From Macrostomum lignano (Eukaryota), in contig NIVC01004621.1 in the NCBI GenBank assembly GCA_002269645.1, positions 1-40,375 of the forward strand: DNA of 40,375 bases, read 5' to 3'. The notes under the pieces are model-generated. The model was not told the origin of the DNA and did not search any database. It was given only the letters and a program-made list of their open reading frames with translations. Below, in pieces: positions 16,601 to 19,600 of this stretch. Made by a program: the position numbers and the translations under genes. Position 1 is the stretch's first letter. The number at the start of each line of letters is the position of its first letter.

Positions 16601-19600
16601 TCCAACTTTTACTACAGTTTGCTTCATACACGTCGGCTAACGGAACCTTTGCTGAATAGCATTTTAGAGCTGCTTATTAGAGGAAGACTACCTATGGGCT
16701 TTGCCAGCTTTTTATTGTCACACATCACAGAATTTGATGACGAAGAAAACTCACTGTTCAGTCAATTTGCTGAAAAGGTTGAAGAGATAGGAGATGCAAC
16801 AGTAAAGTCCGGCTTATTTTCCATTCTAGCGACTACTCTTAAGCCAAGCCAGCTGGATGCTACGGAACTTTTAAAATCTCTGGAAGACCTGAGACCCAAA
16901 CTAAAGTCAAGCTTTGAGATAAATTTTTCAGAGGTGGTCGACTTGGTTGATGCAATAAATTTTTTCTCCGATGCTGTCAAGGAAGCAACTGCCGTGCACA
17001 ATAAGTTTCTCTGTTTTGGTAATGATCAGTCGGACGTTTTCGCCTTTCTCGAGCGCTGCATTCTCACCCAAAAATTACACCCATTCTGGCTACTATTCGT
17101 ACGGTGTCTGCGGCAGCGATATACACTCGGTGAGCTTCACTCTCTCTTCAAACTGGATCACACAGCGTCGCTTTTGCCGACCATTGATAGGGACAAATTT
17201 CTTCGCTTCGGTCAGTCCTCTCAACTGGCTAGTTACTGTCTGCGCTATCCATTCCTAGACTGCTCGGACACAAATTTATATGTTGAAGCAGTTGCTGCCT
17301 TCTCCAATGTTTTAGTCCCAGGAAGGCCGGATTATCTAAAAATTAAGAATTTTTGGAAAAGTATATCACAATACGAAAATCAGAATCAATACTATTGTGA
17401 CACGCTTTCTATCTACATTGAAAGCGTCATGTTCAAAAAGTGCTTCGCGAACTTTCAGTCTCCGGAAAAAGCATTGACTCGAGAAATAAAAGAAAGACTA
17501 ACAGCGGTTTCACACCATAAGCTGCATCCACTTTTGCTAATATCCTGCAGTGAAAGGGACAGCTGCCTCGATGAAGCTAACCTGACCAGTCAATCCAGTC
17601 CTGGACACGTGTGTCTAGCCACATTGTATTATCGGACGCTCCTTAGCTTTTTTATCCATTGGCCACCAAAACCAGGCAGTGTTGTTGATGAGCTAAGCAA
17701 AAGGGACGCACTTGACATTTGCAGCAGCGAGAAAATAAAGCCTAGAGCCTCTGAAGCAGAGCTCTTTGCGAGACATTGCACTTGTATGAGTGTTACAGTC
17801 TACAAGGCGAATGCCGAGGAGATGCGAGGGATTCTATTATACCATTGTGCTTTCTGTGAGTCAACTGATGATAAAGGCCTTTCTAAAACCGACGTTACTG
17901 AGTGGCTGGACGACAAGCCAGTCTCAAGTGGTTTAGACAAAGCGCTTCAGCTACTCGTTTCAATATATAGCTGTGTGTCTGTTGACTTGCATGCTAAACG
18001 TACTGCTTCTCAACTGACGAATAGAAAGCCAACAGCTATTCTTGACCAGTTGGAATCACTGGCTAAATTTCTCGAGTTGAGTACAGAAGACTGCACTTGG
18101 GTGCTTCACTTAGCTTTGCGTGCTTCTTCAGAGTTCCTATTTCATCAGCCAGCCACTGCAGGCTTGCAGACTGCTCGATATCAACTTGCTTGCTGCCTTG
18201 CTTCTCCACAGAGCTCAATTATCAAGTTTAAGCGCGATCGATTAACCGAACGCCAACTTAAAAGTGAATTTTCGTACGCTTGGATTGTGGACGGCCTGGA
18301 TGTCGACTCTTGCGGTAGCACAGATAGTTGCGATGAAATCGACGAGGCAATCGCGACACCGCGGCAGTTTCATTTAGCGCGCAACTGTCTGCTGTTTCCG
18401 AAGTGCAAGAGCGACCTTAATGCAATATGCCATCTGTTTAACTGCCATCAAGTAAAAGTCCGTGGCAACCCTGATGATCCGGCCGATGGAGAAGTTAATG
18501 ATAAGTTTGGACGCTTTCTGGAGTTTGTGCTGCGCCACAGGTCTGTGCTTTCCAATTCTGATCACCTTCGACGCCTGACAATTTGGCACGCGGCCGTTGC
18601 GAAGCAAATCGATGGTCAACTTTCAATGGAAGAGTTTGAGGCCTGGAGGGTGGAGGATTTCCTGAAAAGGTATCCTGACTGTAAGGCGATGCATGACAAT
18701 GCTCAAGTCGCGTGGAACTGCCTGCACCCTAACGCCTTAATGTTAAATTTAAATAACCCGCTGCACTTGAAGCGTCCTTTGCGAAGGGCTCTTTTCACAG
18801 AGCTGTCACCACTGATTGACACGGCTAAGCCCTTGTTGTGTGATCAAAACGAATTTCTAATTGCGGCAGCCGGATTAGCCCTCACCGAAACTTGTGAGGC
18901 ATTGGAGCCTCTATTATCCGCAAGTGAAAGCTTTGACTCTACACCCTGCTGCCATCTCGCTACTGCGGATCTCCTCTCCAGCCCGGATCGGTTGCCAGCT
19001 CTGTCAGCTGACAAGCTTGATCACCTGTCGGCTATGTTTGCCTCGCATACTGCTAATCGTGATTTGCAAATCGATTGGGGTCTCCTAGAGACGGCGGTCT
19101 TCCGCGAGGTCCTGGCTGACAAATGCTTTGTCCGCCTGCTACCCTGGGAGCCGCGGCTGGCAAGCGCGGAGCAGAGAAGCCTGTCTCAGATGATAGAGGC
19201 GTTTCGGGCCAATTGTCCAGAATCGGATTCGGTAAGGCGCTTTGATAAAAGAATAATCTTCTAAAAGACCCTAATATTGTCTTTTACGGTTTATACTTTA
19301 ACGATAGACAAATAACACCAAGTTAGTTTTTACTTTCCAGGTTGTATTTTATAAGCATTTGTAAAATGCAGCTAGCTACAGACCACTTGTCTTTCAAAAA
19401 GTATCAACTGGCTCACTACTGACTGCGTCGACCGCGTCTTGACGAAATCAAGAGTCCGATCTGACACGGTGGTTCCGTCGATGCAGATGCAAACGGGCTA
19501 GGGTCGAATCGCAACTCTTGCAATTTGCAACGCCTCACATTCCAACTGTTGTTCCAACCTAAGCGATTGAATTAGGGCCCTTTTTTAGAAGGTCCGTCGG

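Follow-up and report, generated by a model that had tools for sequence, protein, structure and literature searches.

A locus of the flatworm Macrostomum lignano raises the question of what a protein of the RNF213 (mysterin) family becomes when the cysteine on which its RZ-type zinc finger depends for catalysis is missing. The locus lies on contig NIVC01004621.1 (assembly GCA_002269645.1), of which positions 1 to 40,375 of the forward strand were analysed as one stretch, referred to below as the window. In human RNF213, the RZ finger binds zinc through C4505, H4509, C4525 and C4528, with C4516 as the nucleophile and H4537 as the proposed general base; UBE2L3, docked on the C-terminal domain, hands its ubiquitin to the loop cysteine, the mutation of which abolishes activity and leaves metal binding unaffected (PMC11549300; Ahel preprint). 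The nucleophile has been called strictly conserved, and the C-terminal domain of mouse RNF213 is the E2-docking domain (Ahel preprint); in the context of immunity, ubiquitylation through the RZ finger is regarded as the central activity of RNF213 (PMC11549300). A search of the accessible literature found no paper on RZ fingers lacking the cysteine or on RNF213-like proteins lacking a RING. A first-pass annotation of the window had given the same roles to C4516 and H4537, in agreement with both sources, and had proposed that a degenerate RZ finger is encoded here. We consider it likely that, in the RNF213-like AAA+ giant encoded here, a 36-residue segment is the remnant of an RZ-type finger, predicted to be folded around zinc and to belong to a scaffold incapable of transthiolation.

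Position and alignment of the putative zinc-knuckle segment

The segment lies in an uninterrupted open frame of 1868 codons in the RNF213-like gene (Table 1) and retains four cysteines, arranged as CxC and CxxC. The first-pass annotation had placed it at 17771-17900; the start and the peptide were exact, and the end overshoots that of the aligned segment, 17878, by 22 nucleotides. The claimed loss of catalytic features was borne out as well, in that no GxCG, and no cysteine of any kind, occurs in the 20-residue loop between the ligand pairs, and neither IGG..H nor any histidine is found in the 40 amino acids (aa) after CAFC. The alignments put Asn1385 in the nucleophile column.

The four cysteines likewise fall in the ligand columns of the family. 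In a 32-sequence MAFFT alignment (A3) ranging from Pfam-positive to degenerate fingers, Cys1374, Cys1376 and Cys1397 occupy the invariant columns C61, C63 and C84, and Cys1400 falls in column C87, which is conserved to at least 90% and from which the CPxGH forms deviate. When a Macrostomum-only profile was compared by hhalign with a profile of 30 loci, the two matched in the region downstream of the finger (96.7%, E 3.8e-10), and in the extended alignment the four cysteines pair with the family ligand columns and the catalytic-cysteine column pairs with Asn1385. The family profile itself matches human RNF213 at 4491-5019 (E 8e-37), its finger consensus ytCsCgfvyyikdcgepmksskCpfCkseiggnnH lying on human YTCPNGHPCSVGECGRPMEQSICIDCHAPIGGIDH, and through this match the series is anchored to the RZ finger and C-terminal domain characterised in RNF213. 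A weaker link is provided by a hidden Markov model (HMM) of the degenerate group, which matches aa 1431-1497 of the window protein above all 300 shuffles. BLASTP against one relative, L001, aligns aa 1620-1855 (E 7e-9), and the finger lies 248 aa upstream of this match in the window protein and 236 aa upstream in L001.

The position of the segment within the protein agrees with that of the family. When metagenome contigs were scanned with the conserved AAA anchor, 80 RNF213-like loci were obtained, and many of these consist of a single open frame 4000-5400 codons long; L001, L082 and L083 were added from protein matches (L denotes a locus, P a protein model). One knuckle pair is present in 41 of the 52 loci that have more than 1150 aa past the PFLNRFEKQ anchor. 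It is found 1159-1451 aa past the anchor in these 41 relatives, 1099 aa past it in the window protein and ~1340 aa past it in human RNF213, and the distance from knuckle to C-terminus is 696-877 aa in relatives complete to the end, 714 aa in the window protein and 703 aa in human RNF213. The expectation that the finger stands where a mysterin would carry it thus holds within the family pattern.

Pattern statistics contribute less. Cysteine makes up 3.2% of the 1868-aa frame, in which CxxC occurs once and CxC twice, and the arrangement CxC-x12-30-CxxC is seen in 2.9% of 5000 shuffled versions of this frame, so that taken by itself it is only mildly non-random; the weight of the assignment is carried by conservation and position. 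The segment has the four zinc-ligand positions in the order C-x(1-3)-[CH], then CxxC, and it stands where an RZ finger would, with the E3 module before it and the C-terminal domain after it. It is here called RZ-derived, and not an RZ finger, because it lacks the nucleophile cysteine and the histidine of IGG-xx-His and falls short of the Pfam gathering threshold. Position, profiles and intermediate sequences together indicate that it is descended from an RZ finger.

Direct searches gave a different picture. The match to an RZ-type HMM that the first-pass annotation looked for did not appear, as PF20173 found nothing in the 90-aa segment at E<=10 and nothing in the whole frame at E<=1; the gathering threshold of this model is 27 bits, and it scores the mouse RZ finger, used as a control, at 68 bits and relatives of the CxCG type at 36-67 bits. 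Searches of the PDB by phmmer at E<=10, using 250 aa around the motif and the last 1430 aa, gave no match, and an RZ consensus, used as a control, found RNF213 at E 7e-9 in the same manner. A word-indexed protein search with the C-terminal 868 aa was also negative, and an exhaustive search of representative proteins with aa 669-1868 returned the protein itself, fragment models and one paralog cluster of the same species at 30% identity; a further match proved to be a spurious repeat protein and was discarded. A profile search with the degenerate-group alignment recovered two Macrostomum fragments and nothing else. HMMs restricted to the motif (±15-60 aa) did not score the window motif above shuffled controls, and only those with wider context did so. 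Taken alone, these direct tests would allow the four-cysteine motif to be a coincidence.

No RING accompanies the finger, as the first-pass annotation had stated. Pfam found neither RING nor RZ in the frames or in the 3947-aa model P0057, regular expressions for RING and canonical RZ were without a match in all six frames of the window, and there is no RING or U-box anywhere in the gene. This absence is not special to the gene: RING was found in 0 of 53 RNF213-like relatives by pattern search and in 0 of 4 full tails scanned with Pfam, and a RING appears not to define the wider RNF213-like family.

Graded fingers, shared losses and selection

Among the relatives, the fingers form a graded series. 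Canonical fingers of the form CPxGH...GECG...CxxC...IGG..H are found in L047 and L055, and those of L020, L021, L022, L051 and L049, of the form CxCG...IGxC[GT]...CxxC...IGG..H, exceed the Pfam RZ threshold at 36-67 bits. The L053 group has CxxC...C...CPxGH...IGG..H and reaches 25 bits on PF20173. A loop cysteine without the histidine is present in L037, L040, L049, L064, L080 and L081, and four ligands only remain in L003-L006, L008-L014, L017-L019, L036 and L083, and separately in L025/L045. Within this last class, L009 is a weak RZ match at 15 bits and the other fingers, like that of the window, give none; histidine is mostly missing from the degenerate group, except in L009 and L010, which keep it. 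Overall, a mid-loop cysteine at the nucleophile position is found in 24 of the 41 loci with a finger and is missing in 17, L017 being counted as degenerate since its single loop cysteine stands at a different position and is missing in its close relative L012. The loss of the nucleophile is thus, on these alignments, not unique to the window gene but common to a set of relatives, with no fewer than 16 genes of other organisms among them. Because the same stripped finger recurs in that set, the sequences indicate a maintained state and not the defect of one gene.

The ligand pairs themselves also vary. Among L020-L081 the first pair may be CPxGH, CxC or CxxC and the second CxxC or, in the L053 group, CPxGH, and in L012-L019 an extra cysteine stands behind the second pair (CPxC-x3-C). 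Judging from these sequences, the RZ fingers of RNF213-like genes are more diverse than the Pfam model implies. In L083, from an NCBI eukaryote assembly, RVT_1 reverse-transcriptase open reading frames (ORFs) were found at 5939-8629 and 20669-21805, within and beside the RNF213-like gene, the AAA part of which seems to be split by a retroelement.

Within M. lignano, the paralog P0060, ~30% identical to the window protein, carries DRTCSCYNVTISSENDENPNSMYPCQFCQSEW and shares with it the four cysteines, the V-T after the first pair, the CxFC and the Asn at +11 from the first cysteine; its CQFCQSEWT is closely like CPFCHAEWT in the L003 group. The finger segment of P0060 comprises 27 aa; two further models of this species, P0054 and P0059, skip the finger and hold a different upstream segment. 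This may mean that the paralog encodes the finger in a cassette exon, or else that these three models are faulty. No contig encoding P0060, or another model, P0007, came up in look-ups.

A second copy of the gene, L082, allows selection to be gauged. For the large exon the ratio of non-synonymous to synonymous divergence (dN/dS) between the copies is 0.25, and 0.20 for aa 1301-1858, with dS at 0.03. The two sequences show 32.7 synonymous and 29.3 non-synonymous differences, i.e., 53% synonymous against ~22% if neutral, and the five replacements near the finger leave every ligand intact. On sequence comparison the gene therefore looks constrained by purifying selection, and the residues shared with P0060 speak for constraint as well.

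In a neighbour-joining tree of the AAA4 core, the window protein falls, with 100% bootstrap, into a supergroup made up of all members of the main degenerate group and three loci of catalytic type (L021, L040 and L055). Its 14 nearest neighbours by distance all belong to the degenerate group or have a finger of unknown type. The L025/L045 group stands apart with 100% support inside a catalytic clade, a placement which implies that the nucleophile was lost at least twice.

Predicted role and competing explanations

In the explanation favoured here, the finger, which sits between a divergent middle region and the RNF213-homologous C-terminal domain, would still fold around a zinc ion without forming an E3~ubiquitin thioester. 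Such a protein would not be a transthiolating ligase of the RZ type, and it is probably incapable of ligating ubiquitin as human RNF213 does; the term ligase-dead, used by the first-pass annotation, describes a state that we infer from the residues. Its most likely role would be that of an ATP-driven scaffold or binding protein in which the knuckle serves as a structural or docking element, and an E2 might still be bound through the C-terminal domain. A broader proposition, which we regard as doubtful, is that in a whole mysterin-like lineage, this flatworm gene family included, the former RZ active site now serves structure only, as a zinc knuckle, and the proteins act without any ligase chemistry, or by a catalytic mechanism new to the family. 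In such a lineage the ATPase core would persist along with the C-terminal domain on which the E2 docks, and candidate roles for its members would be those of ATP-driven coats or sensors, of traps for E2~ubiquitin, or of regulators acting on catalytic relatives.

Several points speak against the interpretation as a non-transthiolating RZ remnant. The finger is not seen as RZ by any direct sequence method, the link being one of position, profile and intermediates, and its loop, at 20 residues, exceeds that of typical relatives by five (14-19 in most relatives with a CxC first pair). An AlphaFold2 model built from a 5-row alignment is uninformative, with a mean predicted local distance difference test score (pLDDT) of 33, and the zinc geometry is a prediction from sequence. 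Resolution inside the supergroup of the tree is poor, with 14% bootstrap for the degenerate group together with the window protein and 50% for the degenerate group alone. The loss of ligase function is deduced from two missing residues, and another nucleophile or a direct transfer from E2 to substrate may be used. Finally, the stretch coding for the AAA part is interrupted by four frame breaks of one base each, near 10640, 12453, 13491 and 13608, and if they are real this copy of the gene is broken.

The best surviving alternative, though an unlikely one, is that the protein is still an E3 ligase by other means, either through a recruited nucleophile, such as the conserved cysteine of LLVSIYSCV ~40 aa downstream, or through RING-like activation of an E2 by the knuckle together with the C-terminal domain. 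The E2-docking C-terminal domain of RNF213 is conserved here, the finger has been kept and not deleted, and one downstream cysteine is invariant among Macrostomum paralogs (C126 in alignment A4), but no conserved Cys/His pair like C4516/H4537 is found across the degenerate group. Weak, partial RING-type matches by Pfam do occur in degenerate fingers (zf-C3HC4_3 in L003 at E 0.005, zf-RING_4 in L013 at E 0.03), but these are below threshold and span only half a RING, and the gene, as noted, has neither RING nor U-box.

That the copy is a young pseudogene, in which the residues are missing through decay instead of belonging to a maintained state, is considerably less probable still. The frame breaks would favour it, as would the extra base that L082 holds at each of the three break sites it covers, but all four breaks fall in A or C homopolymer runs, and over 3.3 kb a comparison of the window with L082 shows 13 single-base indels, in both directions, against 2 substitutions. 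This indel-heavy, two-way pattern points to long-read consensus error and not to decay, and the breaks are probable artefacts. The 5.6-kb exon bearing the finger is open and shows the constraint described above, and the stripped finger is also present in P0056, the second gene copy, in P0060 and in 17 other loci, which places the loss before this copy arose. On the open exon, the dN/dS and the homopolymer indels, the pseudogene explanation was judged unlikely.

The slimmest chance of all is given to a random cluster of four cysteines or an unrelated zinc ribbon of other descent, which the shuffling frequency, the silence of PF20173 and the motif-only HMMs would permit, but which is opposed by the finger holding the sole CxxC in 1868 aa at a family-wide position measured from both protein ends, by cysteines in invariant alignment columns and conserved in a 30% paralog, and by relatives with a finger having exactly one knuckle pair at that position, from Pfam-positive RZ through degenerate forms.

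The gene, its neighbours and known systems

The coordinates of the gene and of the finger are collected in Table 1.

Table 1. Features of the RNF213-like gene in the M. lignano window
Feature	Position	Strand	Remarks
Main coding body	7467-19231	+	blocks 7467-7820, 8421-10658, 10634-12469, 12451-13494, 13494-13610 and 13607-19231; from tblastn of P0057, sequence reads and comparison with L082
First active AAA module	12314-12531	+	Walker A GETGCGKTS (12314-12340), Walker B FLDEINT (12511-12531)
Second active AAA module	13309-13544	+	Walker A GKPGCSKS (13309-13332), Walker B VVLIDEIG (13521-13544)
Uninterrupted open frame	13658-19264	+	1868 codons; contains the finger segment
AAA-core part with direct RNF213 similarity	13658-14971	+	frame aa 1-438; human ~2889-3322; phmmer against PDB, human and mouse RNF213, E 9e-35
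PFLNRFEKQ anchor region	14477-14506	+	within the AAA-core part
RZ-derived zinc-knuckle segment	17771-17878	+	36 residues, aa 1372-1407 of the open frame; aligned to RZ fingers of relatives
First ligand pair, Cys1374-Thr-Cys1376	17777-17785	+	human RNF213 C4505/H4509; CxC type, which many Pfam-positive RZ fingers also have; Cys1374 17777-17779, Cys1376 17783-17785
Asn1385, nucleophile column	17810-17812	+	human C4516; 11 residues past the first ligand; hhalign maximum-accuracy and motif alignment
Second ligand pair, Cys1397-Ala-Phe-Cys1400	17846-17857	+	human C4525/C4528; Cys1397 17846-17848, Cys1400 17855-17857
Region homologous to RNF213 C-terminal domain	18038-19222	+	hhalign columns 148-542, 96.7%, E 3.8e-10
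Penultimate coding exon	21199-21864	+	ends CDELEKIL
Last coding residues, ANGSMMQ	22454-22474	+	beyond the microsatellite intron

The gene has the AAA core of the RNF213 family with two Walker A/B modules, both pairs intact, and a C-terminal domain whose homology is seen by profile; the RING of RNF213 is missing, and the last 1430 aa gave no direct phmmer match to the RNF213 C-terminal domain in the PDB. For the Walker A region upstream, matches to RNF213 and to midasin were obtained (phmmer against PDB, E 1e-14 to RNF213), and Pfam recognises only AAA domains (AAA_5 and AAA) in P0057 and in the frames. Three protein models correspond to the gene: P0052 (PAA90242.1, BOX15_Mlig007869g1) is 100% identical across the 1120 residues compared, P0056 (PAA83665.1) represents the second copy at 97% identity, and P0057 is the fuller model. 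The first ~860 residues of P0057 are 84-92% identical to window positions 7467-10658 and the remainder 97-100%, and two gene copies appear to have been combined in this model.

Directly after 19231 stands the splice donor gattcg/gtaagg, and the last intron of the gene contains a long tetranucleotide microsatellite (21870-22340) that translates as (SVCL)n or (DRQT)n. Beyond the gene, an ORF at 26656-27231 (+) encodes an F5/8 type C or NedA-like, fucolectin-like galactose-binding domain (PF22633, 3e-10) with the motif RIYNRLDCCSERL, and a fragment upstream of it, 26315-26548 (+), is similar; the ORF is probably part of an adjacent lectin gene in a GC-richer stretch. A tandem repeat with a period of ~4.8 kb occupies 30039-39941 in at least 3 copies at 98-100% identity and carries duplicated small ORFs (30340-30715 and 35161-35515; 31982-32242 and 36782-37264).

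The findings bear on annotation as well as on mechanism. A constrained member of the family and at least two groups of relatives that keep knuckle, AAA core and C-terminal domain without the nucleophile would constitute natural separation-of-function variants, through which it can be asked what the mysterin scaffold does without transthiolation. The RING-less architecture and CxC or CxxC first pairs are common outside vertebrates, which is relevant to the annotation of RZ-type ligases; PF20173 misses the degenerate forms, and some variants with a mid-loop cysteine, such as L053 at 25 bits, fall below its threshold.

Of the known systems, human and mouse RNF213 (PDB 8S24, 6TAX, 7OIK) share with the window protein giant size, a dynein-like AAA core with two Walker-competent modules, a homologous C-terminal domain and a single zinc finger ~700 aa before the C-terminus. 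Unlike RNF213, the window protein has no RING, CxC in place of CPxGH, Asn in place of C4516 and no IGG..H4537; ~1400 aa between its AAA core and C-terminal domain are without direct sequence similarity, and identity in the AAA core is modest. The fingers of PF20173 (RNF213, ZNFX1) resemble that of the window in their four ligands, their pair-loop-pair order and their protein context, whereas the latter scores nothing on the model, has neither the nucleophile cysteine nor the histidine and has a longer loop. RING-less catalytic loci of the CxCG type from metagenomic eukaryote contigs (L020, L021, L022, L031 and L051) have the same architecture, a CxC first pair and the same offset, but, unlike the window protein, they retain IGxC[GT] and IGG..H and score above the Pfam threshold. 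Nearest by distance are the degenerate loci listed above with four ligands only (L025/L045 standing separately), likewise lacking a cysteine at the nucleophile position, although they are only 13-18% identical to the window protein in the finger and C-terminal region and the first pair of the L003 group is CxxC. Some RING proteins, e.g., BARD1 and MDMX, have no ligase activity themselves and act as partners of active ligases. These non-catalytic members of E3 families offer an analogy from unrelated families, in that they and the window protein have kept a zinc scaffold and apparently lost catalysis.

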